Both the position numbers and the translations under genes were made by a program. Below the pieces are notes generated by a model. It ran no database searches, was not told the origin of the DNA, and saw only the letters and a program-made list of their open reading frames with translations. Of a stretch of 64,000 bases of DNA, positions 17,701-58,900 are shown piece after piece (position 1 is the stretch's first letter; every line of letters starts with the position of its first letter). This DNA comes from Haliotis rufescens (Eukaryota), in the NCBI RefSeq assembly GCF_023055435.1, contig NW_025963846.1, positions 22,320,001-22,384,000 on the forward strand, read 5' to 3'.

Positions 17701-20700
17701 AGTCAATCAAATTACAGTTGTGTTATGAATTTTAGATTTTGACGAAATCTTTTTGTTTATCCTGCCATTCTGAACATCTTAAGCAGGAAATCGCAATTTA
17801 TATTAAAAATATGGTGCTTTGTTGATGTATCATGCTAGGTTACGAGCTGTGACAAAGTTTTTTCATGCATAATTTTGGCATTAAACATCGTGTCCGAGCC
17901 GAGAATTTAGGCGACGAAAGCCGATGTCATTTGATTTACATTACAAGCGATCGCACGAAAAGATGGAAATAATAACTTGGCAGTAAGTTTAACAACTTTT
18001 AGATATATTTTTGTTGATTGTATCTATAACTTTGTATACTATATTCAAAGCTTTGCTTGAAACGTCTTTATTATGCTCTTTGACATGTTCGATGTGGACC
18101 CGTTTTCGAAGTGCGTGTCTGAGATTTTTATTTTAAATAACATTACGGGAAATAGTGAATAATTTCTTAATCTATTGATAAAAAATGATCAATTGAAATT
18201 GAATACGTATTTCAGACATTGTGAAATGTGATAGATTTAGTAAATGAAAGATATGACTGGTAGGTTTAAAAAATTATATACTATTTTGACGTGACTACGG
18301 CTTGGCCGGTAGGGCCTATACCGGCCTACGGTGTCTGGGAATGCTTCTTGGCCGGTATTACGGGCCTACGGTGTTGAATGAGTAATAATGATTAATCATA
18401 AGCAAGTTCAATTTGATTATGAGTTTTCATTGTGTGTCAGTACATATCTGTCAAATGTGGTGGTGGTTGGTGGTTAGTTGTTTAACGCCGCACTCAGCAA
18501 TATTCCAGCTATATGACGGCGGTCTGTAAATAATCGAGTCTGGACCAGACAATCCAGTGATTGACATCATGATTGACCACCCAATTGGGATCGATGACAT
18601 GCATCAACCAAGTCAGCGAGCCTGACCACTCGATCCCGTTAGTCGCCTTTTACGACAAGCAAAGTCACCTTTTACGGCAAGCATGGGTTGCTTAAGAACT
18701 ATTCTACCCCGGATCTTCACGGGTCTCTATCAAATGTGGATTGTTTGAACCATGCTGGGTGTATTTGCCACACAGGAGGCAACGGTTACTCACCTCCGTA
18801 AACTTAACAGGATTAGAAAAAATACGATTTCCCCTGATTCGGAAATGCTTGGTGACAGCATTTGCTGCCTCGCTGGCCTTGTTGAAGGACACAAATCCAT
18901 ACCCCTTCGACCTGATTCAACAGAAGAAAGTGATTGGTGTCAGTCAGCTCTCAGAAAGGTGGTGAGGTGAAGTTGGGTTTAACGCCGCATACAAGATTAT
19001 TGCACTTTTATAGCGATGTGCAGGCACGTGTGGGGGGGGTGGGGGGGCTTGATTGTACTAGTCCGGACTGAGATACCATACCGCAGTTTAACATGAATAC
19101 CCCACTCAGACACAGTATACTGACTCCGAGCCGACCAGTCCTTGTTTTAGCCCCTTAATGCCGAGCGCCAGACAGGGTAAAAACAAGTACCATCGTTTAA
19201 CGTCTTTTGGTATGACGCGACCAGGGATCCAACCCAGGACCTTCTGCTCTCCGGGCAGACACTCTACCACTAGACCATGGAGGCAGTCACTCTCAGAAAG
19301 TATCATGCATTTAATATGAACACTTAATTGACACACTTCTCATGAAGCCATACAAAAAACAACAACATGGCAGCCTTAAATGACATTGTGTGAATGGGGC
19401 ACAAAATGAATTAGGTCTTAGATAAATGAGAGTGCATTGGGCGTAAAGCTGTTTTGAACAGTATTCCAGTTATATCACAGCGTGTCAGCTTGATGTGGGA
19501 GGAAAGCCCGAAGAGATACAGGTTTTGAGATGTTTACCACTTTGGTAAAACCCACTAGCATGGGTGTGGTGCTGACAAACCTAGAAACATTATAAGGGCA
19601 AACAGTATTCGAAGCCACGATCAGAGGTCTCTGGTGTGCGCAAGGGACACAATTCTGCACATTAAAGCACCTTACACGAAATTATCATTCATTTAATATC
19701 AACACTTAACCGACACACTTCCAAATCAAATCATACAAAAGAAAACACTAACTTAACACACTTGGCAGACAGTGTTCAACATGAAGCACGAGAGTCATGG
19801 GGTCCTTGCTATTGCACCAATGTTAAAAGGTTTACAGTCCATTAGGAATTGCATTGGACCCGGACATTTCTCAAAGTACATGTTAAAGTATATTTTTTTG
19901 CTTTTGTTCTTGTCTGTATCTTCATTTCTCAAAAAACCTACTATGGTTTAGTACACTTAAAATTCTTATTTTATCATTTAGACAATGTCGGACATCTTGA
20001 ATTCAATATGTCCACCATAATAGAGGCTGAGGCAAATGGCGTTTAGCTTTCATGACGTCAGTTTGACCCTGGGTCCTCAGAATGAATACCATTGGAGCAA
20101 ACCTCAAGGACCCCAGGACCCATGGACCCTCCTTAGTTTAAAAAAGTACGGGCAGCGCACATTTGAGCTGAATGTTTGTTGAACACCACACTCAAGCTTT
20201 ATTCAAGCTGTATGATGGTGGTCTGTAAATGATGGAGTCTGGATCCAACAATCCAGCGATTCTTAGCATAATGAGTGAGTTTGGTTTAAAACTGCTTTGG
20301 ACAGTTTTTCAGTTCAATCACTGCATCTCATCTCAATGTGGGGGGAATGCACCCAGTGATGCAGGTGGTAGATTGTTTGGTTGGTTGGTTTGTTGTTTAA
20401 CGCCGCACTCAGCAATATTCCAGCTATATGACGGGGGTCTGTAAATAATCGAGTCTGGACCAGACAATACAGTGATTAATATCATGAGTATCGATCCACG
20501 CAATTGGGATCGATGACATGCATCAACCAAGTCAGCGAGCCTGACCACCCGATCCATGCCTTAAGACATCCACAGATTTACCTTTTACTCCCTCGCTTGA
20601 CAACGATGTTGGCAAACATAACCTTTCCACATTCTGAGAAGGTGTTGTACAGATCTTCAGCTGACGTGTCCATAGCTAAGTTAGACACATGGATCCTCTT

Positions 20701-23700
20701 CTTACATTCATCTGGGGTCTTCCTTGGATTGGCAGCCTAAAGTTAACATATTATATGAATATTAGAGTAAATGTATTCAGAAAATTTTAAAGACTACAAC
20801 ATAACTGATTCACATATTCTGAATACATTTGCCCAAATATTAATATACAGACATAAATTAGAATATCAAAATATTTTCTCTATGTAATACTTAGCCTTCT
20901 TTACATTATGCTTTTTGTTGCTTTCTGGTCGAAGTATCTATGGAATGAAGACTTACGAAGATTGTATTCTTGATATAAATAAAGTTCTTAAACAAGAAGT
21001 ATCCCAATGACTGCTCCCTGGAGTTACCTGGAGTTACCTCCCATGCCCCTCTGTGATCAGAGTTTCTTGAGCCCACCTGAAATACTGGTTGCTGGGATCT
21101 ATATTCTCACCCATTTACTCATACTTACCCCTGGAGGATAAGACGTGGTATCATCCGTGGTTTCTTCTAAAGTCTTCACTGAAAGAAATGAACAGAAGTA
21201 TAGTATATTATCTGATATTTGGTTTCTATGAACATGCAACATACGAGAGCCAGATCCACTTTGCCTTTTATGATAAGATACCACACATTCAATACAGGTA
21301 AACAAATGAATTTGGGACGGACAAACAAGTGGTTGATGTTATGAACACAGTCTGGGTACTTGACACACATTCAACGAGGTCAACACGGTCACCGAGGCTG
21401 ACTGCACAATCCAAGCAGTTGCTTCTTACAAAAACATAGAATCAAGTCAGAATCCACAGGCCAGAGCGAGTGAGTATGTTTTTACGCCACTTTTTGCAAT
21501 ATACTAGCAATATCACGACGGGGGACACGAGAAATGGGCTTCACACATTGTACTCCACTATTTCCCTCCTCCCTCGGCTTACATTCCCCGTCAAGACCGA
21601 GGGGGAAGTTTATATCCATAACGTAATAACCTCTTGTGAGGTTTTACTTTTTCCAGGTAGGACCTCATCCTGGATGTGAGGTTTTACTTTTTCCAGGTAG
21701 GACCTCATCCTGGATGTGAGGTTTTACTTTTTCCAGGTAGGACCTCATCCCGGATGTGAGGTTTTACTTTTTCCAGGTAGGACCTCATCCTGGATGTGAG
21801 GTTTTACTTTTTCCAGGTAGGACCTCATCCCGGATGTGAGGTGTTACTTTTCTCCTGGTAAGACCTGGTATGAGGGGTTACTTTTTGCAAGTAAGACCTG
21901 ATAATTTGAGGAGCAGATGGAATTTGGACTTAGTGTTTCAAATGTCCACTGTTCTAAAATCAAAGACAAGAAATAAAACTTTTTCATTGTGGATGGCGGG
22001 AATCGAACCTGCAACCTCACATATTGTGTTAAGTTTTGTAACCCACTGTTTTTCAACTGAGCCACCGGTGCATGATGCTAGAATGTTCAATTTTAGATGT
22101 CATGACTTAGTTTTGTCTATGCTGCACGTTTCTTCTCTCGCACGCTTTGATTGCATTCCCTTTATACCGCGACACACACTGTAAGATATCTCCTGTAAGA
22201 TGTTTCCTTATTTTTTTTCTGTTATTTAGGCGGTACATAAGTGAGATAACACACTCCTCCTCGGTCTCACACTGCCGATACCCTCTTGCCTCGTTCCTAC
22301 TTCCTCAACCATAACCTTGGAGTCGTGATTTATCCTTCACAAACGAACCTCAATTATACATTGACAGGGAAGGATTATTGTTGACAAAAGCGGAATGCCT
22401 ACAATCTACTACAGTGTGTTGATATAGGAGATATCGAAAGACTGGTGAGATAATCTGTGTACCGTATTTGACATAATAAGCACCCAGGGTGCTCTTAAAA
22501 TTAGAAATAGGGGGCTCTTATTAGAATAAATTTTTGGTGAAAAAAATGCCTGTTGAAATATCGTTAATTTTGTGGTTTATGCTGACAGCCTGAAATGATA
22601 CAAAAGAAAAGTCTGTGCGTATTATAACGATAGATATATTTTTTCAGTATTTACTTGCCCATAATTAAGGGTGCATATAACACATAAGTGCGTATTATAT
22701 ACAAATAAATAAGTCTTGTGTACATTGATCAATCGGAAGTGGTGCTAATTGGGACTGTTCACTAGCCGTGGGCGCTTATTAGAGCAGGGGGCTTATTAAG
22801 TCAAATACGGTATTATGGCTTCTAATTAATCAAATCTGTACCAGCAAGCCTGGCCAGTGAATCCCATTGGTAACCTCATACATTAAGCTTGAGTTGCTGA
22901 AGACTAATTCTAACCTGAATCTTCAAGGGTGGAATAAGAATAGCAACTTACCTCTAAATTTTTTACATTTGTAACACTTGAGCCGAGAAATAAAGTTGTT
23001 TAATCCACACTGAAAATATACAATGAATTAAACAATGAATACAAAATCTATAATCTGATTGATTATTTCAGTTAACTCAAAACATTTCCTGTCTCATGTT
23101 AAAACCATAAAATCAGTTCGGCTTAAACTAAAATGGAGCTTTGAACATGTTGAATGGTATTTTCAAAGATATCAAAGCATAGCAGCTAAATATATCAGGG
23201 AAGCAAAAAGTGATGCAGGTCTTTGATGAAACCCAGGAGACACGATATTGGTCCGACAAACCAACTATCACAATCAGTGCAAATCTGTCGTTCAGACAAA
23301 GTCACAGGATCCTTGCACACATAAGGGACACAACTCTGCAAAGACTCCTTAAACCAATGGGCAATCTGTGCCTTCTGACATGATTCCAGCTATATAACAG
23401 CGGTCTGTAAATAATTCGAGTCTGGACCAGACAATCCAGTGATTAATATCATGAGCATCGATCCACGCAATTGAGATCGATGACATGCATCAACCAAGTC
23501 AGCGAGCCTGACCACCCAATCCCGTTAGTCGCCTTTTACAACAAGCATAGTCGCCTTTTACGGCAAGCATGGGTTGCTGAAGACCTATTCTACCCCGGAA
23601 TCTTCACGGGTCCCTTCTGACATGAGTGAGTGAGTGAGTGAGTGAGTATGGTTTTACGCCGCTTTTAGCAATATTCCAGCAATATCACGGCGGGGCACAC

Positions 23701-26700
23701 CAGAAATGGGCTTCACACATTGTACCCATGTCGGGAATCGAACCCGGGTCTTCGGCGTGACGAGCCAACGCTTTAACCACTAGGCTACCCGACCGCCCCC
23801 CTTCTGACATGAGGAAAAACTTGACTCTGCACTAAAATTATGATTAAATTACAACATACCCCAAAATCATGAATAAATTTTGACATACCCCAACACATTT
23901 CCATGTCTTATCACCACCTTTGTCGTCTGAGCGATGGTCTTGACCATGATCTTTGTGAAGTAGAGATAACCCTTCTCCAGCATCTACTGCTCCAACGTAT
24001 CTGTCTGAACTACCAAACCGACCTCTCCTGGATTGGGAACCGCCCCTATCATCGCTTCTATGTCTGTATGAGGAGCTGTAGGGGCTTGAATCCTTCCTAA
24101 CATTTCGGTCTAATGATCCTCTTCTTCGAGAAGATCGGCTGTCATCTTTCAAACTTCTGTCAGTTGACAGTCTTTCATCCCTGTTGCTGCTGATCGGAGA
24201 ATATCCGTCACGTGGGTAGCTTCTATCAGGCGAGTGTCTGTCATCCCAAAAGACTCTATCTGGTGAGAGACTTAAATCATCTCTAAAACGTCTGTTTGGG
24301 GAATCTCTTCGTTCAAGAGAATGCCTGTCATCTCTAAAATGTCTATTAGGAGACTGCTGTCTTAAATCTCTATCTAGTCTTGAATCTCTATCTAGTCTTG
24401 AATCTCTATCTTGTCTTGAATCTCTATCTAGTCTTGAATCTCTATCTAGTCTTGAATCTCTATCTTGTCTTGAATCTCTATCTAGTCTTGAATCTCTATC
24501 TAGTCTTGAATCTCTATCTTGTCTTGAATCTCTATCTAGTCTTGAATCTCTATCTTGTCTTGAATCTCTATCTTGTCTTGAATCTCTATCTTGTCTTGAA
24601 TCTCTATCTAGTCTTGAATCTCTATCTAGTCTTGAATCTCTATCTCGTGATCGTCGTTCATCCCTGAAGCTCCGATTGGGTGATTGTCTCAGTTCTCTTC
24701 TACCAGGTGAATTTCTTTCACTTCTAAAATTTCTACCAGAAAAATGGCCCATATTTCGTTTCTCAGGCCTGTCATCTCTATCATCGTATTGACTTCTGTC
24801 TGGAGAGTGCATGTATGAATCTCTCGGATTGTTACTCATTGTCAAATCATCTTCTCTATGAAAAGAAGAATGTAGATCAGGTGACCTCCTAGATGACAAT
24901 CTCCCCTCTAAGGACCTCGATGGGGATCTTCTTTCCGGAGACCGCAGTGACCTCCTAAGCCTATACTCCTCTTCTGAGGTGGAAGTGGGACCATGTCTTG
25001 CTGCATCTCTTGGCGTGTTCTTGGTCGGATGCTTATTCCCCTGATGCGAGGAGCCAAACACTTCTGCTGCATGTTTCATAAGCGCATCATCGTGTCCATC
25101 GTCTTCCCTACTCCTGTCTGCTTTTCCCCTGTCTTTTCTTCCCCTGTCTCCTCTTCCCCTGTCTTTCCTTCCCCGGTCTTCTTTCCCCCTCTCTTCTTTT
25201 CCTCTGTCTTCTCTTTTACTCTTCTGGTCTTGTTTCAGGATGGATTTTATCACACCACCACTCCCATCGATTGGAGGTGCCCCACCAAGAAACCTGAAGA
25301 AACCATATTTTTAAGAATATCCCATGAGGGCAACTTGACAGAATTATTCAGTGACTGCAAACCGGATAAATATAAAACAGATACAATGTCATTAAAACCA
25401 GATCTGATACTCCAGTACAACNNNNNNNNNNNNNNNNNNNNNNNNNNNNNNNNNNNNNNNNNNNNNNNNNNNNNNNNNNNNNNNNNNNNNNNNNNNNNNN
25501 NNNNNNNNNNNNNNNNNNNNNNNNNNNNNNNNNNNNNNNNNNNNNNNNNNNNNNNNNNNNNNNNNNNNNNNNNNNNNNNNNNACCTTTAGCAACATTCCA
25601 GCATATCACATTGGTCTTCACACATTGTACCCATGTGGTGAATGAAACCCGGCGTGACGAGCCAACGCTGTAACCACTAGGCTACCCTACCGCCCCTGGT
25701 CATGCAGGTTAGCCCTAGGCAAATTTAGGCCACCAAATCTAAGTGAAATATGTAAGTGTGCGATGGGGAAGCCTAGTGGATAAAGCGTTTGCTCGTCACA
25801 GCGAAAGGCCTGGGTTCGATACCCCACATTGGTACAATGGACAATTTAGGAACTGGCCATTTATTATAGTGAGTGAGTGAGTATGGTTTTACGCCGCTTT
25901 TAGCAATATTCCAACAATGTCACAGCGGGGGACACCAGAAATGGGCTTCACACATTGTATCCATGTTGGGAATGAAACCCGTGACGAGTGAACGTTTTAA
26001 CCAGTAGGCTNNNNNNNNNNNNNNNNNNNNNNNNNNNNNNNNNNNNNNNNNNNNNNNNNNNNNNNNNNNNNNNNNNNNNNNNNNNNNNNNNNNNNNNNNN
26101 NNNNNNNNNNNNNNNNNNNNNNNNNNNNNNNNNNNNNNNNNNNNNNNNNNNNNNNNNNCAAATGATGAAAACACGCTGATGTGTTTGGGGGAGAGGGGTC
26201 ACCAAAAAATGTTACATATATATAGGGGGGGTCATCAAAATATGACACAATCCCAAGACCAATCTCCACCCCCTACCTTCTCCATAATCAATTACCAGTC
26301 CCAAACAATTCTTCAGCCATCAAACATCATCTTTTCACAAAAGTTCCCCTTTATTTGTTTATCACCTCGATTCGCAAATTTCGATTTGTACACTACAAAA
26401 CCTTAACAGAACACAAAGATACTTGGATGGTACTTGTTCCTATTGGTGAGTAGTCAGATCTTCACGCAGAGGTGTTGTATCAGAGTTTAAGACCTGAAAC
26501 TAGTTTTGTTTGTCATATTACTCCACACTCGGCAATATTCCAGCCACATGTCATCTTCCCTAGGCAAGGGAGTTAACTGACTAACTCACCTCGAGAAGTG
26601 CATCAAATCACGCGAGCATCTTCTTTAAAAACATGAAAAGATTTGCAAAATATCTGCTGATGCCCAGTTGATGGTAAACGTCCTTTGCAAATCAACCCAA

Positions 26701-43900: not shown

Positions 43901-46900
43901 TACATAAAATGTGTTGATGTCTTACCAAAGGTGGCGGTGGCATCAACTTCTTGTCCTCCCCCTTCTGCAAAGATGGAGAAGTATTAGCAAAATGCAAATT
44001 ACAATGAGTAGATGCACTAAAATGTCTTGATTACTGAAACCTTTTGTCTTGTCCTCAAAATGTTTTCTCCATACAAGGCTCACATGCAAATATTTATACT
44101 TCAACACGATGATACACCTGTTTCACCAGATACACAACATAAAGAATATTATGGGATCTTCAAGAACGTACAGTTTTCTCCAGGATGGCAAATCCTGCAT
44201 CTGCTGTGGCAGACTCTCGCTCTTCCTTCCTCATGCCGCCGATGCCTCCAGTGTTGATGGTGATCTTCCTCGTGCCCTCCTTCATCATCTCCTTCTGGGC
44301 ATTTAGAGACTTGGCCCATTTCTCCATGTCCTGAACAGCCAGAGACACAAAGCATCAAATCTATACCCACACATAAAAGTACTTGCCACATATAAGTGCC
44401 ATTTTTACATTTAAGGGGGGTTTGCTGCTGTGGTATTTGGTTCTAGGGACCCCCTAAATCTGAAACTTTTAACTTTAGGATAATGCCAAGCTCAATTTCA
44501 AAACATGGAGTGTATGAGTTTTTTCCTGTTCTTAGTATATTTATCGCCCTCACTTATAATGTAAACGTCAGTTATTTCTCAACTCTTGACTTTTGTCAAT
44601 AGTCTTCCCTAGCTACTGGCAATTTCTACACAGTGCCCTCACCAGTCTAGCGACACAAGAACATTACAGTATATTCTGCATGAGGTAAACCGGAAGTTTA
44701 CATATCATATTAGCATCTAAATATAGTAACTTCCTGATGACTGCTTACATTAAATAGTACCACATTCCTGATGACTAATCACTGCCAAAATACAATGCAA
44801 TGAGTGTCTAGAGAATCTCAACAGAAACAATGTAAAACAGTCACAATCATTGTTCAACAATAAAATACACTGCCATATAACAATATACAAAATGCAGTCA
44901 AATCGGGAAAGTAAATCATAACTAATGGAAATTTACATATTTACATATCTTCTAGCACCAATAGTGATATGATATAACGAGACCCCTAGAAAGCCTGAAA
45001 TTCTACTGGCCATAAGGATACCTGTAACACTAGACGAACTGTCTCCTGTTAGTGGGCTTGTGTCAAGTTGCAACCTGAAATCCCAGACATGTTTCCAAGC
45101 TGCCACAATGTCCATCCCAGCAAGTAAATGGGGTACTTCTTGCTTACCTTTGCTATTTTCTTGGCTATCTTGACCTTCTCCTTCTTGTCTTTCTTATCCT
45201 TCTTGTCTTCAACTCCATCAAAACTGAGCTCTGTTTGTGAGGGTGCAGGAAGATATGTGGACTTCTCCGCGTCCCAGTACATGAACTGTTGGGTTTGAGG
45301 GTTGTAGAAATACTGCAATGGAGAGACATCATCAAGTGTGAGTTAGTCCGTCAGTACTCAGACAAAACAAAATTATACTATGCTTGGGTAGCTGAAGACT
45401 CAAGCTGAAAACCAAACCAAACCCCAACTTGTCAAGTGCTACAACTATCCAAGTGAGTGAGTATGGTTTTACGCCGCTTTGTGCAATATTCCAGCAATAT
45501 CACGGCGGGGGACACCAGAAATGGGCTTCACACACTATACACATGTCGGGAATCGAACCCGGATCGTCAGCGTGACGAGCGAATGCTTTAACCACTAGGC
45601 TACCCAACCGCCCCGGATATATGGAAGGTTTTGGGGCTATAGAAGAGGATGAAGGTGTGACAAGATAATCTCTCACACATTTCATCCCACAGTTTCATCT
45701 GAGAGTACATCAAGACCAGCTTTCGCATGAAGATCACCCTGGATGCCAAGCCTAGGCCCATCTCGGAAGCTTGACCACCGTCTCCGCTTGGTGAATATGT
45801 ATTATTATCACTGACTTTTGCTATCACCAGTGTATTTTTGTATTTAATACTGACCACTGCCATCATATTATATACTGCCACTGAATATTGTACTACCACT
45901 CTATTGTGTACTGTCATTGTAATTTGTAAACCTAATGAATTTTGTAGTATATTTGTTGAATGTATACCATTTGTTGGTTGTTGGTTGGTTATACACCAAG
46001 TTCTTTTAGGTACAGATTTCTGGGTTAACATATTGTTTAATTTGGAAATTGACACGTAACACCATATCTGAAACCAATACGGTAGCTGTGTATACCAAAT
46101 ATGCAGCAACTATCATCATGGACTTGCCCACAAAACCACTAATCTCTGCGTCAAATATGTGGATTCTGATGTACTGTGAGCCCTGTATGAGTACATATCG
46201 GTTGGTTTTCCATGTATCATGAGTCAAATCAAAACACCCTCCATCTAGCCAATAAAGCTTAAAATCGACTTTGTACACTGGGGCATAAATCATATTGTCA
46301 CACATCCCCAGCATGGAAACCTCGACAAGCCATTCAAAAAGACTTTATGATAAAGCATCTCCAAGCACCTGTGAGGCAAAGTTTCGGAAACAAAAGATTT
46401 CCAAATGGTTATAACATTATCAGGTGCTGAATCACGGGAACCATGATGATTGAAGCAGGTCAATAGAATGTTTGTAGTCAAGCAAAAGCCTTTTTCATAA
46501 AAGTATTTAATAATCCTTTTCAGTAACAACTTGTTGTAACATCCAGTCATATCAACTTTGACCCTTTCAACACACAATCATCTCGATCACAGTTATAATA
46601 AATGTTTCATACATTTTCTTTCACTGCTTGGCAGATATCATTCTTAAAAAAAATAGCATCAAATAGCACTCTATATTGAGACAACTAATCAAGTCATATA
46701 AATCAGAACTGTCATTTCAACAAGTGCAAATGTTACAGGTTCAAATCTAGTCATTGCAGTCACATCCACGTCATGTCACTAATGTTCATGACCAAAACTA
46801 AACATGTGAACTCAACAACCAGTGATCTACGGACTGATCTGATGATCAGAAACAGTGTCTGGTTTCTTAATCCATGCACCTCTGAATTCACAAGTTTGAC

Positions 46901-49900
46901 ATCTCTGCTATAAGCTAGTATTCCTTATAAGTCAGTTTGATATGTTAATGGTGATACCATGGCATCTGTCAGTTATCTACTCCTTTTTTTCTAGTTCCAT
47001 GAGCTGTCTTGATGCCTTTTCATTTGCCTGCTCAAGAAGAATTAGGTATTCATCCGTCCAGGACAAAAAACATGTCAGTTCTTTCTCTGTCCTCCCCATT
47101 CTTGGAAGCCGTATTGATGGATGAGCAACCTCAATGATCCGTGGACGTTTAGGTGCCCGGCTTTTTCTGCTACCTTTTGGCTCACCACTGGAGTAATCAT
47201 CTTCAGTGGCTGCTAGCGCTTTCCCAGCTTCCTTCACCTTACTGCTTCGTCTTGACTGCCTGGATGTCTGTCCACTCAAAACAGTCCTTTTCTTAGTCCC
47301 CTTCTCCTTGGGACCAATGCTTCGTTGACTGCTAGATTTAGTGACATCCTTTGTTATTACTGCTGTTTTCTGATTTGCCTTGGGACCAATGCTTGGTTGG
47401 GTGCTAGGCGGAGTGACAATCTTAGTTAATACACCTGTTTTCAGCTTCTTCTTTCCCTGTGAATCAACACTTGGCTTCCTGCATGGCTGCCGACCAACTA
47501 ACACAGATGTTTTCCGACTTTGTGTTGGCTGCCTGTATGACTGTTGACCAACTAAAACAGACATTTCCTGATTTCCTGTTATCTTCGGATCAATGATTAA
47601 TGCACTATTATCTTCCTTCTCCAAGGAACTCGTGACAACACAAGCACCCTTTGTGACAGACAAAACACTTGATCTGTTCGCTGACTTTGTGGCACTGCTT
47701 GAGGAACATGCCTCACTTTTAGTCAAATCGCTTTCAGCTTCTTTAACATGAGCAGAAATGACGTCTGTAATATCAGTCTTTTCAAACTTGTCCAAACCTA
47801 AGATTTCTTGCGTGAAAGGACCTGGATCTATGAACTGTTTGTTTGGAATACTTTGAGTTTCTAAACACATACCATCAATAATATATTGTGTGTAATTGTG
47901 CTCTTTTTTCATATGTAGTTTGAGAACATTTTGATCAAGTACAATCTCCATGCAATCAGGGCAATTATACATTAATTTTTTAAAGGTGTGTATATTATTC
48001 CAATGATCCCTATAAGCCTTCTGTGTAGTGACAACATAGTTGCAGTTTGGTATTGGGCACTTTTCCATTTCCAATATTGACTGTTTCCGTAGGTGAATAG
48101 AAGACTCATTAGAAACTGCTTCAGTCTCCGGAAAACTTTTCCCTGTCATCTCCGAAGTTCCAGCAACAGTGCTACTCTGGGCAGTCTTAAATTGCCTAGC
48201 ATCAGTAACTACATTTTCAGACACACTTGCTTTTGAAGCATCCTCGTCACGGTTTGAGGGAAGCTTGTCAATGACACTTGAACTTTTCTCAGTTGCAGCC
48301 GTCTCTCTCCAAGATTCTAAACCCAACATCTCCAGAGTATAAGAACCTGGATTCATGAATATATTGTTTGGAACTTGGTGCATTGTGAGGTCCATGGTTT
48401 CTAGTTGTTTTATTTTATACTCGTGCTGCTCTGTCATGTGTTGCTTGATAACAAGTAGATTATTATAAGTACTGCTGCACTGTGAACACTTGTACACTTG
48501 ATGCATTTCCTGATGTTTCTCAACCCAGTGTCTCCTGAAGGCATCCTGACTTGTGATAGCATAGACACATTTTTGTACTGGGCAAATTCCCCGTTTTCTA
48601 AAGGAATGCCACACAGCATTAGATGAGGGTTGAGTTCCTTGTTGAGTTCCTTGTTGAATTGCTGGTGGAGTTGCTGGTGGAGTTGCTTCTTGAGTTTCTG
48701 GTGGAGTTTCTGGTTGAGTTGCTGGCTGAGTTGCTGGCTGAGTTGCTGCTTGAGGTGGTGATTGAGGTTTTGCTTGAGGTGTTCGTTGAGTTGCTGGTCG
48801 AGTTGGTTGTTGAGTTGCTGGTCGAGTTGGTTGTTGAGTTGCTGGTCGAATTGGTTGTTGAGTTGCTGGTCGAGTTGGTTGTTGAGTTGCTGGTCGAGTT
48901 GGTTGTTGAGTTGCTGGTCGAATTGGTTGTTGAGTTGCTGGTCGAGTTGTTGGTCGAGTTGCTTGTTGAGTTGCTGGTCGATTTGCTGACTTGGTTGTTG
49001 AAACCTTAGGTTTGTTTCCCATTACATGTTTGACTGGTTGTGGTGGAATATAAACAGTGTTGACTTGGATTAAATTGGGGTTGCTGTGCTTCTTCCGCTT
49101 TGTTTGTCCTGAAAATACTGGTGTGCTTTCAACCATGGCTGGTGGTTTTCCTTTTACCCCAGCATCGCCTTTCACTTGGGTCTCAGGAGCTTGTACCTGC
49201 AACACAAAGAGAAGACACTTTAGTGAGCTGGAAAATGAGTGTGTGTGCTCATTAAGTGAAGGATTGTAATGACATTGACCATACAACTCACTGAAGTTCA
49301 CCTACAGGCACGAATCCTATATCAATGCAGAGGATCAAAGAGAACATTTGTAGAAATATTTGCACACGAGATAAGTTAGGTAGGTAAGTAAATTATGCAA
49401 GAAAGGTACAGCCACACACATTTGGAATTTAGGGCAACAACGAAAATGTTCAGTCCTGAGTGGGTGAACATTGAGTGAGTTGGGTTTAACGCCGCTTTTA
49501 ACAGTATTCCAGTTATATCACGGCGTGTCAGCTTAATGTGGGAGGAAAGCCCGAAGTGAAGCAGGTCTCTGACGTTTACCACTTCGGTGAAACCCACAAG
49601 CACGGGTATGGTTGCTGACAAACCTAGAAACATAATCAGGGCGAACCGGGATTCGAACCCACAATCATAGGTTTCTGGCGTGCCCAAGGGACGCAACTCT
49701 GCACAGCGAATCGCGGCGCCTTAGACAACTGGGCCACCCGTGCCCCCAGGGTGAACATTGCTTATAGTCAGTCAGCAGTATTCCAGGAATTATATAAATC
49801 TGGGTGAGGAAGACCAGCGACTGTAGCAACAAGAAACAATCAATGTTAACAATAATAAGCCAATAGCCAAGACACCTCACAGCACATACTGGGGTCGATT

Positions 49901-52900
49901 TGACTGCTGGCCCATTGGCCTGTGGCCAGTTAAAATTACAAAGGGCTTGCTGAAATGTAAAGTAAATGGCCCGTCTGGCTAGTCAAAATTTCATCCCTAC
50001 TCGTGTATGTTTAATGTTATTAATTGGATCGTCTCAGTAGGATGACAACTGGCTGACATTTTGTAATGTTGTGTACAACGACTACTTCATCTGCTTATAT
50101 AGTGCCATGAAATGAGGCAAATGGAAGCCAAAAGTTAATCTTAGAGTGCAGAGAAAAACGTTTTAGGCATGAGGAATTCTAAAATTTTCAAAGCCCTGCT
50201 AGCTGGCTACGTGACCTCAGGTACGGCCATTTCGTGGCCTCTACCATGTAGTTGTAGGCCAGTTTGGAGAAGGGCCAGTAACATTTGAAAGGAGCAAGCC
50301 CTGCTGGCTACACACAAATTTGTTGTTAAATCTACCCCTGCACATAGGTTGAGCGAGTTAAAATTTAACGTCCCATCGCCAATATTTTAACTATAAAGCA
50401 ATCCTGCACATAGGAACTGTGCCACATGTGAGGTGAGGTGAAATTGGGTTTAACGTCGCATCCAAGATTATTGCATTTATATAGCGACGTGCATGCACGT
50501 GTATGTGTGTGTGTGGCTGCTTGTACTAGTCCGGACTGATGCCGATTTATAGTGCTAGCTCACTGAGATACCATGCCGCAGTTTAACATGAATACCCCAC
50601 TCAGACACAGTATACTGACTCCGAGCCGACCAGTCCTTGTTTTAGCCCCTTAATGCCGAGCGCCAGACAGGGTAACAACAAGTACAATCTTTTAACGTCT
50701 TTTTGTATGACGCGGCCCGGGATCGAACCCTGGACCTTCCGCTCTCCGGGCGGACGCTCTACCACAAGACCACGGAGGCGGTCTGTGCCACATGTACCAA
50801 ACATGCATATGTCCCTATTACTGCTTCACATACCTTCACTGGCTGAGGACACACTGTATTTCCAGGATCTACATAGGCCTTGTTCTCCCTAGTCTCAGAT
50901 TTCGACAGTTTCAGCAGCAGATCATGTTGCTCCCCCTTGATCCCGTGGACTTTACAGATGTGTGCTGTGAAAGCATGTTTGGAAGGGTAGGCCTTTTTGG
51001 ATCGCTGAAACTGACACTTGGGGTGAGGACAGCTGTATGTAGTGATGGTGGGCTTGTGGACGCTTGACCAATGGTCCCTCAGTTCTACCCATACAAGTTC
51101 AACACTGCAGCTGCTTACTGGGCAGGGTACCTGCAAGAAACAAAGCTGTTCATTGTACTTCCTCATCAAATATTAAACACCGATCAAGGCCTCAAAGTTT
51201 AATTTTTTTTACAAAGAAGCCGTATGGCTACAAATATTTTTTTCCAGGTAGCCAGTGGTAAAATCAAGAAGTCAAGCCAATATTGTAGGTAGCCAAAGGC
51301 ATTTGAAATTATCTTTTATCAAATAACTATTATAACATGCATAACACTAAGTCATAACACCAGTCTATCCAATGAGCTAAAATACTAATCAACGTACATT
51401 AATATATATGTATATCTGTTCATTGTCGACTATAGGAGGTATTATACGCGAGTACAATTATCAGCAGATATTTTTTCCACAATCAGCTGTTATTTATTTT
51501 TGTGTCTTCAAATGCAAAGCAATAGAATTTAGTCGCCACAAGATATTTTTCATAGTAGTCATTTGGCTACCTCTGAATTTTAGACAGTAGACATATTGAA
51601 ATTTAGGTCGAATTGGCGAACGTTTTAGTCTCAACTTTGAGGCCTGTGATCTTTGATGATGCTAATACTTCCTTGTCTGTTACGAGGTACCACAAAAGCA
51701 ATAGGGCAAATGGAATAGAATAACATCTGTCTTTAATAGAGTTGTAAAAGATTTAACCATCACCGAAAATAAACAAATTCTCATAGGAATCTGAATAATT
51801 TCATTACACTCTCTTGAGCTAATAAAATATTTCAGTTCTATCTACTTCTAGTTCCAATGGCTTTGTTATGAAACATCAAGACGCAAGTCATTGTACATAC
51901 CTGCCATGTTCTTTCTTCAATCATTATCTTCCACACTTCCGCTTCTGAACCCGCGCATAAAAGTCACAAAATGACATCGTATTTCGTCTGTTTCTGACAG
52001 AATACCTCATCCCATCGAAACAAAGTAGTAAAAGACTGACACTTTCAACAATTCTACTGGTAGGGTACACTAGGGGTTTTATATCTGCAAGTTCCAGTTT
52101 TGACCTGGAAACATCTTTATAAACAAAGGTTCAACGTCTAAAGCTTCTAAGTATGTACAATGACAAGCTTAGTAAAATCTGAATACTTTTTACATTTGGA
52201 TACTTTTTCTACATTACTACCTTAATGCTAGTACTGCTGTTTTTTTACTTCGGAGACGGAGCTGTAAGAGGTGCTGGCTACAGAAGTTGTTGTACCCACT
52301 AGTTGTGTGGCTTCCTTCCTCCCGGGGATATGCTGGACAATGAACCTCATGTGTAGTCGATCCACTAATTGGAAGTGAGTGAGTGAGTGAGTATGGTTTT
52401 ACGCCGCTTTTAGCAATATTCCAGCAATATCACGGCAGGGGAAACCAGAAATGGGCTTCACAAATTGTACCAATGTCAGGAATCGAACCCGGGTCTTCGG
52501 CGTGACGAGCTAACGCTTTAACCACTAGGCTACCCGACCGCCCCACTACTAGAAGTACTGGAAGATCTGAGATAGCAGGGATGATGAGTGAGGAGTTCAC
52601 AGGTTGCACAGACACCAGGCAACTGGGATGTGTCTGTGGAAATGGCAAGTATTTGGTGCTGATGCCGGGACTACCAATGAGACAGTGATGAGTTCTAATT
52701 CTAGATTGTTTATGTGCCATCAGAGTCGAATGTTTGACCACAGCCTGGAGGCAGTCCTTCAGATGAGCCCACCAGCCGTCATGATGCGTCAACCAACAGG
52801 TGGAGGGAAGGCTTGAGCACTGTCAAGGAGACATCATCACAGAAATCTTACTGTCCACCAATGAATAAACAGGGCCAGAAACATCTGTAGTGGACGTAGT

Positions 52901-55900
52901 CTGCCTCTGGCTGTCTGATCCTGAGCTGATGTGAGAAGACCCATTAATACCTGCCATTGATGCAGAGTGTGAGCTTAGTGAAGGGCAGGAAACAGATGGT
53001 GCTGCATTTTGTGCCCTACCTGGTGTCTCGTACCAGGACTGCAGAACAGGACGCCTATGAACTGGAGCTTGAATGACTGAGTGAGGTACGATTTAAGCTT
53101 GTTGACAATCCATCCCAGTTGTGCAGGTAGATGGGTGAAATCCCTGTGAAGTAGAAGGGTCTCTGTGTTCTGATGAGTCAGTAGGCAGTCGATGATGTAA
53201 GACTCAAACTGAACATTCCTCAGGTATGCGGAAATTGGCCTTGTAATCCGGGTAAATAAGCATGGGGCCGTGGAAATACCAAATGGGAGGACCGCCCACT
53301 GGTAGTGTATACCCTGGAAAAAGAACCTAAGGAACTTTCTGCAACTGGGTTGGATGGGCACATGAGTGAGTGAGTGAGTATTGTTTTACGCCGCTTTTTG
53401 CAATATTCCAGCAATATCACGGCGGGGGACACCAGGAATGGGCTTCACACATTGTACCCATGTCGGGAATCGAACCCGGGTCTTCGGCGTGACGAGCGAT
53501 CGCTTTAACCACTAGGCTACCCGACCGCCCCCGATGGGCACATGAAGATGAGCGTCCTGGAGGTCGAGACTGATCAGGGAATCGCTGGCATTGATTCTGG
53601 TCAACGTAAGTGAAAAAAGTAGGGAGGACGTTCCAGGTAGAGCTTGTAGAAGATGGCAAGATTGTGTATCATCTAAAACTTGGATGAGTCCTTCTTGGGC
53701 ATAAAAGCACCTCAGTGTCAACGTGATCAGCTATCTCCGAAGTCTGAGAAGTGTCCCTGTGGTCGGCCATCTGGGGATGTCTGCAGTTGTGTTGTTTTCT
53801 CAAAACCCTGACATATACAGCGAAATCACTGGGGGAGAGAACTCGCTTTAACCACTAGGCTACCCGACCGCCCCCGATGGGCACATGAAGATGAGCGTCC
53901 TGGAGGTCGAGACTGATCAGGGAATCGCTGGCATTGATTCTGGTCAACGTAAGTGAAAAAAGTAGGGAGGACGTTCCAGGTAGAGCTTGTAGAAGATGGC
54001 AAGATTGTGTATCATCTAAAACTTGGATGAGTCCTTCTTGGGCATAAAAGCACCTCAGTGTCAACGTGATCAGCTATCTCCGAAGTCTGAGAAGTGTCCC
54101 TGTGGTCGGCCATCTGGGGATGTCTGCAGTTGTGTTGTTTTCTCAAAACCCTGACATATACAGCGAAATCACTGGGGGAGAGAACTCACACCGCGGCGGG
54201 ATGTGGATCCTTGGCTGATTTATTGCCCAGGCAACGTGACATTTAATTATAACGAAATAGACAAGTGTTTCAAGCAGAATAGACACACATGTTGTCAACA
54301 AAGATAGATGGGCACGTAATTGAAACTTATGAGAAATTACGATAAAAGAGTATAACTATACACTTGGAAGACCCAGAAAAGAAAAGTATTTAGAATTTAA
54401 ACAAGAGCTAAAATAGACATATTGAATTACCAAAGCACAAGACATGTAAACATGACAACTTGGCAAAACAAGATGGTGGCAGGCACAACAAACTTGTGAA
54501 GTAAGCGCGGGAAAGAGCCAAAGTCAGGCAATAATTACACTAACATGTGCCTGAAAAGACCACCCTAGTAAACGAGACTATAATCTAAATAACTGAGAAC
54601 ATATTAATTATCAAAGGATAAACAAAGGGACAGGCAGAGGATGCTATCTGGTTCTTCAAGCTGGGGAGCTTTATTCTCAAGCATCTGCTCCTTCCAATGT
54701 CTAGCAGTGATGTGATTATACGTGACCTTGCCACTTCCGGTCACAACAACTTCTGTAGCCAGGACCTCTCACAGCTCCGTCTCCGAAGTAAAAAAACAAA
54801 CAGCAGTAGAAGCATTAAACTAGTAATGCAGGATAAGATAAAAAATTTATGTCATAATCAGAAACAAAGCCAGTGGCTCTGTGCAGATTTAGACACAGCC
54901 TGAGTTGGCCTTTCCTTTGTATCATTAATTAGAACTTGAAAGTTGCATCAAACATGTCGAAAGAATCATAAGAACTGTCTGTTATGTTGCAGTCACAGCC
55001 TGAAAACATGGGACAAGGCAAACTACTTTCTGTCCAAGACCTTTCTTTATCATGTTTATGCTGTAGGATCTGACAGCATAAAAGTTAGGTATGTCATGAT
55101 ACAGGTGTCACACAATACGACAAATATCTCAATACAGAAGCAATGATTTGACAAATATCTCAAAACACAAGTCATGATTCAACCAATCTGTCCTCAGATC
55201 TTTGTTTAGTGGTAGCAAGAACTAAGGTCTGATTTTAATGAGATTGTGATTCAACAAATATCTCAATACAGAAGCCATGATTCGACAAATATCTCAATAC
55301 AGAAGCCATGATTTGTTAAATATCTCAGTACAGAAGCCATGATTCGATACAGATCTTAATAATGCAAATTTGACATGTTGCGTAGAAATATCCAGTCATT
55401 AGACTGAGATTAGAGTCCATAGACTATAAAAAAGGTAAAGAAGAACAACTGACTGATACCCATCAACATGACACTGAGTCAAGTTAAGTATTCTGTTTGA
55501 GACAAAGAAACAAAGTTTATGTGCTGTATCATAACAGGAAGCAAGGAAACCCCAGTCAGTCTGATACATTTATATACTTCTATCTCACACTATGCATTTC
55601 TCTTTCTACTTTCGATAAGTGGATAATAAAACCATGCCACCCTAACACATCAAGCATCACCATGGTCACCTCCCAACAATCTGGGTCACTGTGTTTACCT
55701 ACATGCACTGAACATGTGATTTCCTGTCCACAAAGGTGGCCTGTAGATAAACCTGTCTACAAGAGAGGCATGCGTTGAAAAATGCCCCCAAAAGAAGCCT
55801 TGAAGTCTTCAAGAGGGAAAATTGGAAAAAAGAGAAAAGCCAAATGGATTCTTTTGTGAGGACATGTCACAACACTGGCGATTTGAAAGAGAATAAGTTG

Positions 55901-58900
55901 GCTGGGGAAATCCCATGTTCAGTGTGTGTAACTTGTAGGTCGACCGGCATGAAGTGTGCAAGACCCAGATTGTTGGGAGGTGACCATGGTGACGCTAGAT
56001 GTGTTTGGGTGGATTGTTTTTGTCAGAGGCTGGAAAACTTTGTTTAGGCATGTTTCCATTAAGAATCAAAAGAAGAATGAGAAATGCATATTGTGAGTTA
56101 GGAAAAGTACAAAATATAGTTTGTACTTGCTTATCGATATCAATGCGAGATTAATATGGGGTTAAATGCGAATTGATGCCTAATTTAGTGTATCAGGTAT
56201 CGTATCACGCAAAGTTTGCTAACGATGCACCGGTGTACCATCGCAACATCAATGATAAAAGTTGTGCTTCACAGGCGTATGATTAATGTTTGTGATGATG
56301 GTGATGAATACCTGTGAATTGGCATCATAGTAGAGCCCTGTTGATGGATCATAGTAGTATCCTGAGGACTTATCGAACTGGTAAGTTGATACATCGGGAG
56401 CTGCTGCAATAGAATGTAGCTTTCAGGAAATATTGGTAAATTATGGATGTACAAGAAATTCTTCACCCTTGTCAATCCATGACATCAACAGTTCAACTTA
56501 CTTCCGATTACCATAGCAAATAATTTTTTCAGATAAAAACTGAAAACAAATCATGTTAACCTTATTTTTCAAACAGGAAATCACTTCAGCTATCAATCAC
56601 AATAAAATAGATAATTATGAGATACACTTCTGTGAGCAATGCGAGGAATACTTACGATATGCAAGTACTTCTTTGTTCCCAGCAGGCTGGGCAGCGGCCT
56701 GTTCAACTACTGGCTCGGCCTTCTTAGCACCTGGTGTCTGGAAGAAATTCACCAAGAACAATTTTTATGTTCTAGAAATACCATATAAAAGTTCATTATG
56801 TATTATGTAAACATGGAAGGGGCGTTTATCAAATTAATCTTGATCAGTTGATGGCCTTATTCTACCATGAAGATGTTTGATTCAAAGAAAGACTTTGTTT
56901 AGATCTTGTATAAGCAACCTACATGCCGATGCATAGCTGCCAACTTTCCCAAATTACAATGAGTATTTTGTCTTATCTTCTGGTTGGGACACCAAAGTCT
57001 GACGAAATGAATCATCTGCTGGACAATAAAGCCATGTGATTCCGAAACTCAGAAGATAACTTTATTTCCTAGTTTCTATTTCAACTACAGCAACTTCCAA
57101 TAATACGATTGGAGTGACTCCATTGGACAGATGCAATACAATAGACTTCATACCAGTCGAGAAACACAACGAAATCGTATGTGTATGGCTAACTGGCGAC
57201 CCTCTTTTCACAATGCCTTTTTTAGTCCTTGTCATTTTTTTTCATAGAATGGCCAGCATAAGAAATTGGCATGAGTCCTGTAGTCCTTGTCAAACTGCCC
57301 AATAGTTAAGGTATCATAAGGACACCATTTTGCCATTTTAAAGGGTTTTGCTATATGTTATCATTATAGTCATTAGGACTAGTGGTCTAAAAATGTTTGT
57401 TTGAATGAAGGAAATAATCCTTCCTTGTTTGACAAGTACCTGCTTGTTGTAGTTCTTGGCAGCATTGGCTTGGGCAATAGCAGCCTGAGCAACAGCAGCT
57501 GCAGCATTGGTAGAATCCGCTGGAAATGTACAATCACATTATATGCAATTATTCACATGCAAAACCAAAAGGACATTACAAAGAAGAAGTAGATAAGTCT
57601 TGATCATATCAACATATGGAGAACACAGAAACTTATGCTATCTTCTGACTTACTTCAAATGTCGGGCATACAAATCAATTGTAAAGATTTGTGTATTGGT
57701 GAATATTGCCTCATGAACATTTGCCTGAGAAGTTAAAGCAGGTCTGTAGTTCCTTTTCACAAACAGTGATGAATGGATGGTCATGCTACAACTGCTGTAC
57801 CCAGACCTGTTTACTCCTAACTTGCCATACCAGTAGTTCACTAAGAACAGAGCTCCAGATAAGCTGCGTATCTGCGTAAAATATGAATAAAAAATGCAGA
57901 AATATGCAGTAAAATAAAATCCAAGTGTATCAAATACGCAACGAACATTACAGATTTGTTACAAAAATAAAACTTGTCCGTATCATCAAAATATTGTGAA
58001 GTAACCCAGCTTATTCGATTAGCAAATCAGCAACTTATTTTGAAATTATAAACAGACATTCCGTCAACCTTGCCAAACTCCACGATGACAGTTACATCAT
58101 GATTATTTGCCATCACACTTTCTTGTGGAAGTATCGTGGTATTTTTGAGTCCTATAAAGCTCTCGAACCCACACGACACCAGTTTGCAGGGACTAGATGA
58201 ATAGTGTTCTTAAATATTTAACTTAAATACCTACATGTGTAAAAACTAGTGGGTAACAGAAATTTGAATACCAAGATAGAATTAATGATACACAATGATT
58301 TTAAAATACCCACAACACCAAAAGCTTATCTGGAGCTCTGTAAGAATCTGTCTGTAGTTCTATTTGTCAGTAGTCATTGTTATCAGTGTGAGAGCAGGTG
58401 AAGTCGAACTCATCAAGGGACATCGTCCAAACAAATGTGTTGTTTTCTTACCAATTTTGAATGGAGGTAGGGGGAATTCTTCTTCAAAAAGATTCCAGAA
58501 ACTATCATAAAAAAGTTGACGTGCATACTTACTAGTAGCCGTGACATATCACAACGAGTGCTGTAATCGTGCGATGAATATCGTACTTAGATTTGGGTGT
58601 GTGGATTACGAGATTTACTGATACTGCAATAACACAGTCATACTATAATTCATCAGTTAAGAACTTAATTTATATGATATTCTTAAAATCTGTCAATTTC
58701 TCACCAGGACTTGAAGTCAGTGTACTTAATGAAAAATCTGTAGGAACTATGAGAAACTGTAGGAGTAAACAGGTCTGTGTATCTCTCATAATGGTCTAAC
58801 AGAAGAATGCTCGCTCTATGCAAAGGGACCCTGGAGCAGGCAAACGAGTGACTGAACCAACAGAAGAGAGCTCAGTATCATTCCACCTCCAACATACCAA

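Follow-up and report, generated by a model that had tools for sequence, protein, structure and literature searches.

Host gene and the divided OCRE domain

The DNA analysed, here called the window, is a stretch of 64,000 nt from Haliotis rufescens (red abalone), and all coordinates are positions in it. The genes and exons described in it are all on the minus strand. The main gene (the host) is of the RBM5/10 type, and its predicted domain order follows that of RBM5 and RBM10: RanBP2 finger, RRM2, OCRE, C2H2 finger and G-patch, with RRM1 lying outside the window. Pfam scores were 22.8 bits for RRM_1, 44.3 and 22.3 bits for two OCRE matches (the second slightly below the cut-off of 24.7) and 62 bits for the G-patch; the RanBP (14.5 bits) and C2H2 matches were weak and under the cut-off. 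Immediately downstream, and in the same orientation, comes a second RBM-type gene (gene B), an arrangement resembling the RBM6-RBM5 tandem pair of vertebrates.

An 11-kb intron dividing the OCRE domain had been noted in the initial annotation, and it is present (56311-45313, 10,999 bp; donor CAG|GTATTC, acceptor TTGCAG|TAT), with the two Pfam OCRE halves in the exons on either side. Positions 1-28 of the domain (44.3 bits) are in the exon at 56312-56403, and positions 28-51 are in the exon at 45170-45312 (low end approximate; acceptor TTGCAG|TATTTC). The preceding host exon (56656-56740), located by tblastn with P0001/P0003, is found in all of the RefSeq chimeric orthologue isoforms described below, and the intron at 56404-56655 is removed by splicing in contigs of all four RNA runs. 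Host exons downstream of the large intron (OCRE C-terminal half, C2H2, G-patch) are intact. The other host introns had been given as 0.2-1.9 kb, which is roughly correct apart from one visible intron of ~2.6 kb.

The intron also contains a reverse transcriptase (RT) fragment of an unrelated retroelement (52975-53361; Pfam RVT_1, 35.1 bits; very high repeat depth), flanked by SINE-like copies at ~52375-52545 and ~53380-53530.

A coding block within the intron

Two exons (51130-50834 and 49196-46977) lie wholly within the host intron and on the host strand. Together with a candidate ATG micro-exon they make up an 846-codon ORF model, which was reproduced and is stop-free until its terminal stop; so long an open frame is more than expected by chance. 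The micro-exon is counted as exon 1, and the two long exons are referred to as exons 2 and 3. Phase 0 is shared by the donor of the host and by exons 2 and 3.

Exon 2 (297 nt, 99 codons, phase 0/0) encodes one complete paired-C2H2 module with its cap. The AlphaFold model of this exon has a pLDDT of 91.5, and searches with the module model returned only generic tandem C2H2 fingers in Foldseek (E >= 0.3) and in the VIA fold search (Z <= 4.8), and only generic C2H2 clusters in the ESM Atlas. Exon 3 (739 codons plus a stop codon at 46979-46977) is the terminal coding exon. It contains, in this order, a basic stretch (KRKKH), a P/T/Q-rich tandem repeat of 24 nt x15 (48988-48628), module 2 (48596-48312), module 3 (48077-47772) and a C-terminal FLxWT helix (~47130-46980). 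The sequence from 46976 to 45313 is assigned from its letters alone to a 3' UTR and the remainder of the intron; it carries a SINE-like element at ~45470-45610 and candidate poly(A) signals that are ATTAAA variants only, near 46517, 46042 and 45848. An intronic poly(A) site would be expected somewhere in this stretch, downstream of exon 3.

The block is single-copy in the genome, low-complexity matches aside: with the exons searched separately rather than as a joined protein, exon 3 found only low-complexity P/T-rich matches in its own genome. Exon 2 shows 78% identity to H. rubra (tblastn) and keeps all eight zinc ligands across three species, and compared with a second species sampled by RNA (organism B) it has 5 synonymous and 6-7 non-synonymous changes (pN/pS ~0.33). 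The C-terminal helix is likewise conserved in three species. Exon 3 as a whole is only ~50% identical between species, and modules 2 and 3 do not occur in the models from H. rubra and H. asinina (alignment to P0004/P0002); much of the tail is therefore weakly constrained.

Orthologue models in other abalones

RefSeq holds orthologue models from H. rubra (XP_046577146/7/8, isoforms X1-X3) and H. asinina (XP_067685048/9, two accessions of one sequence). The presence of orthologues in two congeners points to more than a chance ORF. All five models run from the exon of the OCRE N-terminal half into exon 2 and then exon 3, in frame, with the chimeric junction YYDA(S/T)SQ|(V/A)SCPV (for example YYDASSQ|VSCPV). 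The host parts joined to exon 2 are the RanBP2 finger, RRM2 and the OCRE N-terminal half, and each model carries at least two host exons, although models of this kind are generated automatically and may fuse a nested gene with its host. RefSeq names such as 'proteoglycan 4-like' are misleading for these loci.

Isoform X3 of H. rubra and the H. asinina model begin inside the host gene, suggesting that an additional, internal promoter may exist. The initial annotation had gone further, describing an intact 3-exon nested gene. A real, intact, expressed, same-strand coding unit does exist, but the orthologue models speak against its autonomy. Same-strand nested genes likewise have their coding exons wholly in one host intron and on the host strand, but they use their own promoter and no host exons, whereas all available models of the abalone block share host exons.

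Transcripts across the block

Exons 2 and 3 are expressed. Between 61 and 79% of exon 3 31-mers are present in eight RNA-type runs from two studies, and RNA contigs from two species (X5 record 15 and X9 record 22) are spliced at both ends of exon 2. Expression and splicing of the two exons are more than chance. As stated in the initial annotation, the host has to skip strong splice sites when making its canonical mRNA.

The exon upstream of exon 2 was examined in the contig layout of four runs (X1, X3, X5 and X9; three from the same species plus organism B), in which k-1 = 30 nt. In X5 record 15 and X9 record 22, exon 2 occupies record positions 34-330, after 30 nt and an ambiguous GTA. An overhang of 30 nt equals the k-1 overlap, implying that the exon upstream of exon 2 is common to another splice path. 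The other continuation of this shared exon does not start with G, which fits the host exon, since the next host exon starts with T; a second continuation beside exon 2 does not fit a dedicated first exon. Host contigs end exactly at 56312 in runs X3, X5 and X9, where the 5' end of exon 2 assembles. In run X1, a host contig passes through 56312 and the 5' end of exon 2 is unassembled there; record 7 of this run continues 354 nt beyond the donor at 56312, and this extension does not map to the intron. Transcripts of the block therefore coexist with a canonical isoform in which it is skipped. From this pattern we infer that the upstream partner of exon 2 in H. rufescens is the host exon, and that its donor at 56312 (CAG|GTATTC) is common to the canonical and alternative endings.

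The 56312 to 51130 junction of H. rufescens was absent from the best-supported contig joints listed, which are SINE artefacts. GTA comes directly after each of the two candidate upstream exons, and bin depths could not separate the two candidate partners. Word searches found no short RNA-derived protein fragments across the host-exon 2 junction and, when made with a 503-aa paralogue, nothing within its length range.

Exon 2 might instead be a cassette exon of the canonical mRNA, inserting a single zinc-finger module in the middle of the OCRE domain; its length is a multiple of three, and phase 0/0 suits both host exons. This is scarcely credible. The exon 2 contigs of X5 and X9 extend 255 and 289 nt past the exon 2 donor and end at the onset of exon 3's 24-nt tandem repeat, which means that they do not join the host exon at 45312; a path into that exon would stop ~30 nt after the junction. 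The cassette form is also absent from public models.

The candidate micro-exon (51924-51901; MIEERTWQ; ATGATTGAAGAAAGAACATGGCAG|GTATGT) would be the first exon of an autonomous same-strand nested gene, with a promoter near 51930-52100 reading into exons 2 and 3, and with the host-exon 2 junctions of public models being minor read-in chimeras or annotation merges. It is well formed, combining an in-frame ATG with a CAG|GTATGT donor, and is one of only two in-frame ATG...G|GTRNG candidates in the 5,181 nt considered. Low contig depth (3.9-6.8) is seen in organism B at 51780-52179 around it, and the two public models that begin within the host gene, together with a related retrotransposon ORF that is free-standing (see below), are also in keeping with such a gene. 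Against this, the micro-exon is used by none of the five RefSeq isoforms of the orthologue, all of which carry at least two host exons, and contig depths over its bin in the four runs were 0, 0, 0.85 and 3.9, the zeros being X1 and X3, i.e., two of the three same-species runs. The start exon proposed in the initial annotation is accordingly unsupported, and the nearby ETS-like motif is at chance level (seven occurrences of the core CGGAAGT in the window, 3.7 expected). The 30-nt overhang, seen in two species, fits the host exon rather than a dedicated first exon, and all four Haliotis relatives examined have RRMs upstream of their modules. We regard an autonomous nested gene as unlikely.

A family of paired-C2H2 modules

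The modules follow the pattern C-x4-C-x11-HW-x3-H ... C-x2-C-x12-H-x4-H, then an N-x-F-x-DPG cap. The three modules of the block align with 11 others, in which H, W, H, C, C, H and H are invariant, and matches to the module profile have E values of 1e-29 to 1e-36. A profile search of 1.84 billion representatives gave 42,710 matches, swamped by ordinary C2H2 arrays, and only those spanning the whole module were kept. They resemble Pfam zf-Di19 (PF05605), a pair of atypical C2H2 fingers, in having two successive C2H2-type fingers within ~55 residues. Only two sequences exceed the zf-Di19 cut-off of 27.5 bits, namely module 2 of gene B (35.9 bits) and P0019, the H. rubra orthologue of gene B (28.6 bits); within the block, the best score of exon 3 was 14.9 bits, and exon 2 had no match. 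Features absent from zf-Di19 are the HW that is invariant in the modules, their C-x4-C first knuckle and their N-x-F-x-DPG cap.

Gene B, the tandem neighbour of the host, carries the same modules. It has a RanBP2-type zinc finger (22962-23015; tblastn; P0019 vs P0003), an RRM (18794-20736, in exons 20736-20584 and 18910-18794; tblastn with P0019; Pfam RRM_1) ending in NPVKFTE immediately ahead of the module exon, and a terminal exon (10338-11783; acceptor cttacag|AAATTATCG) encoding three modules and a FLAWTD helix, with 57% identity to residues 280-741 of H. rubra XP_046577129. P0019 shows the same order (RanBP2 finger, RRM, three modules, FLAWTD helix), its exons map in the window, and it is colinear with the chimeric isoform of the host. 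The C-terminal (F/L)LxW(T/S) helix of the block aligns with KFLAWTDSLM of gene B (E 4e-05). P0004 and P0002 conserve this helix, and it also occurs in L023, P0124 and P0070.

Outside the window, further relatives are represented by RefSeq models: a single H. rufescens locus, also on this scaffold, and a single gene each in H. rubra and H. asinina. RRMs lie ahead of the modules in P0124, P0070 and P0061 (H. rufescens itself), so that the combination occurs in all four Haliotis relatives with a full-length model, P0019 included; at the host locus, this order is conditional on use of the host-to-exon-2 junction, as in P0001/P0003. The Haliotis family of RRM plus paired-C2H2 modules is undescribed.

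A relative on a mobile element

A related module ORF of 280 aa lies 3' of the integrase of a Gypsy-type retrotransposon present in at least 20 copies, and the integrase adjoins the module ORF in all of five further copies. It is free-standing, has its own ATG, and matches module 2 of the block (E 1e-06) and P0070 (E 2e-07). By these matches the block domain is homologous to the mobile-element ORF, and transfer could have gone in either direction. No integrase, RT or LTR of the module-bearing Gypsy element was found beside the block. The RT fragment at 52975-53361 was considered as a remnant of this element and rejected, as there is no similarity between them.

With a related ORF on a multi-copy element, a fast-evolving exon 3 that has lost two modules in congeners, and an intron full of SINE and RT debris, the block could be a decaying retroelement-derived or duplicated ORF, functionless and transcribed only as a by-product of the host. 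Such decay seems highly improbable for a single-copy sequence of 846 open codons with two precisely spliced introns, in which conservation across three species extends to exon 2 and the C-terminal helix, all zinc ligands are kept, pN/pS is ~0.33 and no integrase, RT or LTR of the Gypsy element adjoins.

Discussion

We consider that the block serves the RBM5/10-type gene of the abalone as a set of alternative 3'-terminal exons, with a probability of roughly two in three. Transcripts leaving the OCRE N-terminal-half exon at 56312 would then take one of two routes. Splicing to the distal acceptor (45312) would give canonical RBM5/10 with a complete OCRE domain, C2H2 finger and G-patch, while splicing to the strong proximal acceptor (51130) would lead through exon 3 to its stop codon and to a poly(A) site within the intron. 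The protein from this route would join a front of RanBP2 finger, RRM2 and half an OCRE domain to a tail in which three paired-C2H2 modules are combined with a P/T-rich linker and the FLxWT helix. The balance between the endings would be set by acceptor competition together with cleavage and polyadenylation within the intron. The tail is probably a zinc-dependent array binding nucleic acid or protein, and may retarget the RRM.

Known alternative last exon (intronic polyadenylation) isoforms similarly have one donor, a proximal intronic terminal exon with a stop versus a distal canonical acceptor, and two proteins with a common N-terminus and differing C-termini. The abalone case differs in that the tail is 838 residues of unrelated, folded zinc-finger modules rather than a short truncation, that the ending halves a domain (OCRE), and that the poly(A) site is a candidate only. 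We know of no vertebrate RBM5/10 isoform in which a zinc-finger module array replaces the OCRE-C2H2-G-patch half.

Host-transposase fusion genes arise when alternative splicing captures a transposon ORF (Cosby et al., bioRxiv 10.1101/2020.05.07.082677). The likeness lies in an intronic domain of DNA/RNA-binding type related to a mobile element, spliced to upstream host exons while the canonical isoform coexists; in the abalone, however, the mobile relative is no DNA transposase, being an accessory ORF 3' of the integrase of a Gypsy-type LTR retrotransposon, and the block is not flanked by remains of the element. A speculative and distinctly doubtful scenario is that a Gypsy accessory zinc-finger ORF was captured in the OCRE intron, gave rise to the RRM-zinc-finger form, and was then copied into free-standing genes, namely gene B (with RanBP2 finger, RRM and modules, and with 'STLYDD' as a vestige of OCRE) and perhaps others, and that RBM5/10, a splicing regulator, might govern which of its own endings is used. 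If so, the locus would preserve a gene family at the moment of its birth. The autoregulation suggested in the initial annotation draws no support from the present data.

The proposed alternative ending is a lineage-specific elaboration of known mechanisms and involves no new principle. Should the chimeric isoform prove real, abalones would possess a conserved splicing regulator with one RNA-binding front and two entirely different effector tails, one of them from an undescribed family that occurs repeatedly behind RRMs in Haliotis and has a retrotransposon relative, and the locus would offer a testable case of domain shuffling via alternative last exons.

Coding Block in the OCRE Intron

The host gene lies on the minus strand, and its Pfam domains (a weak RanBP2 finger, RRM_1, OCRE, a weak C2H2 finger and a G-patch at 62 bits) correspond to the RBM5/10 architecture. 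The OCRE domain is divided between two exons, with positions 1-28 in the one at 56401-56312 and positions 28-51 in the one that begins at 45312. It is thus split by a 10,999-bp intron (56311-45313), which confirms the initial annotation on this point. A three-exon, 846-codon gene had been placed within the intron, also on the minus strand, and this model was reproduced by ORF listing and direct reading. It comprises a candidate ATG micro-exon at 51924-51901 (MIEERTWQ followed by GTATGT), exon 2 at 51130-50834 (99 codons; acceptor TTTCTTGCAG ahead of GTACCC, GTGAAG ahead of the donor GTATGT) and exon 3 at 49196-46977 (739 codons plus stop; acceptor TGTGTTGCAG ahead of GTACAA). The intronic block contains no N stretches. 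A 24-nt tandem repeat (15 copies, 48628-48988) inside exon 3 encodes (R/T)PATQQP(T/I) repeats.

Expression and Splicing

Between 61 and 79% of the exon 3 31-mers were present in eight runs from two studies, and about 40% in two related species. The runs carry only the label 'RNA?', and their cDNA nature was judged from their behaviour: the host intron at 56404-56655 is cleanly spliced out in all four runs aligned here (X1, X3, X5 and X9), and depth is zero in the majority of intronic bins. Two contigs, record 15 of X5 (585 nt) and record 22 of X9 (619 nt), match 50831-51127 with their positions 34-330, while the 33 letters before and the 255 and 289 letters after match no adjacent genomic sequence, although this was included in the comparison. 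Exon 2 is thus spliced at both its acceptor and its donor. The three letters absent at each contig end are GTA, the triplet with which exons 2 and 3 start and which also comes directly after the host exon as well as after the micro-exon. Use of exon 2 as a cassette exon was considered and rejected, since a path into the host exon at 45312 would stop about 30 nt past the junction. Instead, the contigs run on to the start of the exon 3 tandem repeat (48988), so exon 2 continues into exon 3. Separately, patchy RNA contigs of low depth (~1-18) were seen in 4/4 runs at 55580-56180, just downstream of the host donor, and may represent intron retention or an unannotated exon.

The exon 2 contigs of both species compared begin exactly 30 nt ahead of the junction (k-1, with Logan k = 31), which implies that two paths with different first letters lead on from the final k-mer of an upstream exon. 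After the host exon, the first letter is T for the canonical partner exon and G for exon 2, and the host exon thus fits as the shared upstream exon. Host contigs halt exactly at 56312 in X3, X5 and X9, the runs in which the 5' end of exon 2 was assembled, and extend 354 nt further in X1, the run lacking it. From this graph logic we infer that the host exon precedes exon 2 in H. rufescens, the junction being deduced rather than seen.

The intron and exons 2 and 3 of the proposed coding unit stand; its micro-exon and the nearby ETS-like motif are not supported. The motif occurs 7 times, where 3.7 occurrences are expected, and bin depths over the micro-exon in the four runs were 0, 0, 0.85 and 3.9. 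A dedicated first exon would give a contig assembled further upstream. That the block is an autonomous nested gene, or has an internal promoter in addition, is possible but less likely. The best reading, with a probability of roughly two in three, is that the block is an alternative last-exon set giving RBM5/10 a zinc-finger tail.

Orthologues and Constraint

A word search with exon 3 matched only H. rubra XP_046577147 ('proteoglycan 4-like isoform X2') and H. asinina XP_067685048/9; isoforms X1 and X3 also belong to the H. rubra cluster. All of these models, which are automatic RefSeq predictions from two species, lack the micro-exon and read …YYDA(S/T)SQ joined to (V/A)SCPV…, that is, the exon with the N-terminal half of OCRE in frame with exons 2 and 3. 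In H. rubra, the RanBP2 finger and RRM2 are present as well in isoforms X1 and X2; isoform X3 and the H. asinina model begin inside the host gene, yet hold two host exons. Misassembly had been named as a possible refutation, but the arrangement is not a misassembly, because the same layout occurs in the models of two species.

Identity to H. rubra declines along the locus, from ~97% in the RRM2 exon (88 residues, our own count on the tblastn alignment) to 80% in the OCRE N-half exon, 78% in exon 2 and ~50% in exon 3 as given by tblastn. Modules 2 and 3 (paired-C2H2 units, 47772-48596) are present in H. rufescens; the H. rubra and H. asinina models (P0004/P0002) lack their zinc-finger parts and keep the module 3 cap (IDPGP). 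Either these parts were lost in a lineage-specific manner, or the gene predictor left them out. At the site of the 24-nt repeat, the congeners carry another sequence, rich in P/T/E, which is probably the source of the RefSeq name 'proteoglycan 4-like'. Compared with organism B, the second species among the RNA contigs, exon 2 differs at 12 nucleotides, and 5 of the changes are synonymous and 6-7 non-synonymous; the resulting pN/pS of ~0.33 (65 synonymous and 232 non-synonymous sites) indicates modest constraint on this small sample.

The Module Family and the Tandem Neighbour

The module follows the pattern C-x4-C-x11-HW-x3-H, then C-x2-C-x12-H-x4-H, then a linker ending in N-x-F-x-DPG, and a conserved CF(L/M)SWT…L helix forms the C-terminus of the block protein. 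For exon 2, AlphaFold gives a confident model (pLDDT 91.5), which matches only generic tandem C2H2 fingers. Pfam holds no family specific to the module, with zf-Di19 above cut-off on a paralogue only. In the H. rufescens genome, the module profile found both window genes, four long ORFs elsewhere on the scaffold (17.67-17.92 Mb), one locus on C235 and a repeated ORF of ~280-330 aa. The four clustered ORFs (single-exon, 1110-1729 aa) each carry two modules, an FLLWSH helix and a long R/D/E-rich repeat tail. RefSeq models for two H. rufescens loci on this scaffold (LOC124121356 and LOC124121362) are 2,000-2,100 aa long; P0061, the model that was scanned, places seven RRM stretches ahead of two modules.

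RRMs likewise precede the modules in the other Haliotis relatives examined with full-length models: P0019 (H. rubra XP_046577129, on the same contig as the orthologue model P0001; RanBP2 finger, RRM, three modules, FLAWTD), P0124 (H. asinina; RRM, two modules, FLLWSH) and P0070 (H. rubra; RRM(s) by Pfam, two modules, EWTEQ). The 'nested gene' corresponds to the C-terminal half of this RRM-plus-module architecture. Outside Haliotis, full-length module matches occur in arrays of up to ~20 modules, one named source being the bivalve Sinanodonta woodiana, and no RRM was found in 4/4 scanned array proteins.

P0019 maps to gene B, the tandem downstream neighbour on the minus strand (9000-30500), with upstream exons at 30286-30176 and 28061-27792, the RanBP2 finger at 23015-22962, the RRM at 20736-20584 and 18910-18794, and a terminal exon with three modules and the FLAWTD helix at 11783-10338. 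P0019 and the chimeric RBM5/10 isoform, in which host exons are joined to exons 2 and 3, are colinear; the colinearity takes in 'KLST(L/N)YDD', aligned to the OCRE remnant 'STGLYYDA' but too short for significance. Inside gene B there is also a 469-aa R/D/S-rich ORF (23844-25253) that is absent from P0019 and may be an exon in H. rufescens, and N-masked stretches (~25350-26150) lie between this ORF and the upstream exons. On the plus strand, 13900-16000 holds a long, satellite-like tandem array of repeated ORFs (…HTSNVFSTKVISIFRKSQ…).

Mobile Elements

A Gypsy-type integrase (Integrase_H2C2, rve, Integrase_p58_C) precedes the repeated module ORF by ~400 nt on the same strand, an order found in the reference copy and five further copies. 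Env-like ORFs of Gypsy-type LTR retrotransposons occur 3' of the integrase, the site occupied here by the module ORF. There are at least 20 copies, of 100% to 28% identity and some with stops, and their module matches the cellular modules at E 1e-06 to 2e-07. The reference copy (L025:2707-3549; G000:C46:710706-711545) encodes 280 aa with one paired-C2H2 module and an NENFVDPG cap. A decayed copy lies on the scaffold of the block (C68:22426700-22427353), 42 kb past the window. Within the window, the block is not flanked by any integrase, RT or LTR of the module-bearing element; a mobile origin is possible, with transfer in either direction.

Other repeats near the block include tRNA-derived SINE-like copies (…GGTTCGATCCC… cores) at 52375-52545 and 53380-53530, which flank an RT fragment (52975-53361), and at ~50740-50790, 49650-49740 and 45470-45610. 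RNA contig depth over these copies is 3-7 x 10^5, and the artefactual joints that they attract number in the hundreds.

A literature search found no paper on Haliotis RBM5. In the nearest described mechanism, outlined by Cosby et al. (bioRxiv 10.1101/2020.05.07.082677), host genes capture transposon ORFs via alternative splicing. The block represents a lineage-specific variant of known mechanisms, with an undescribed domain family.
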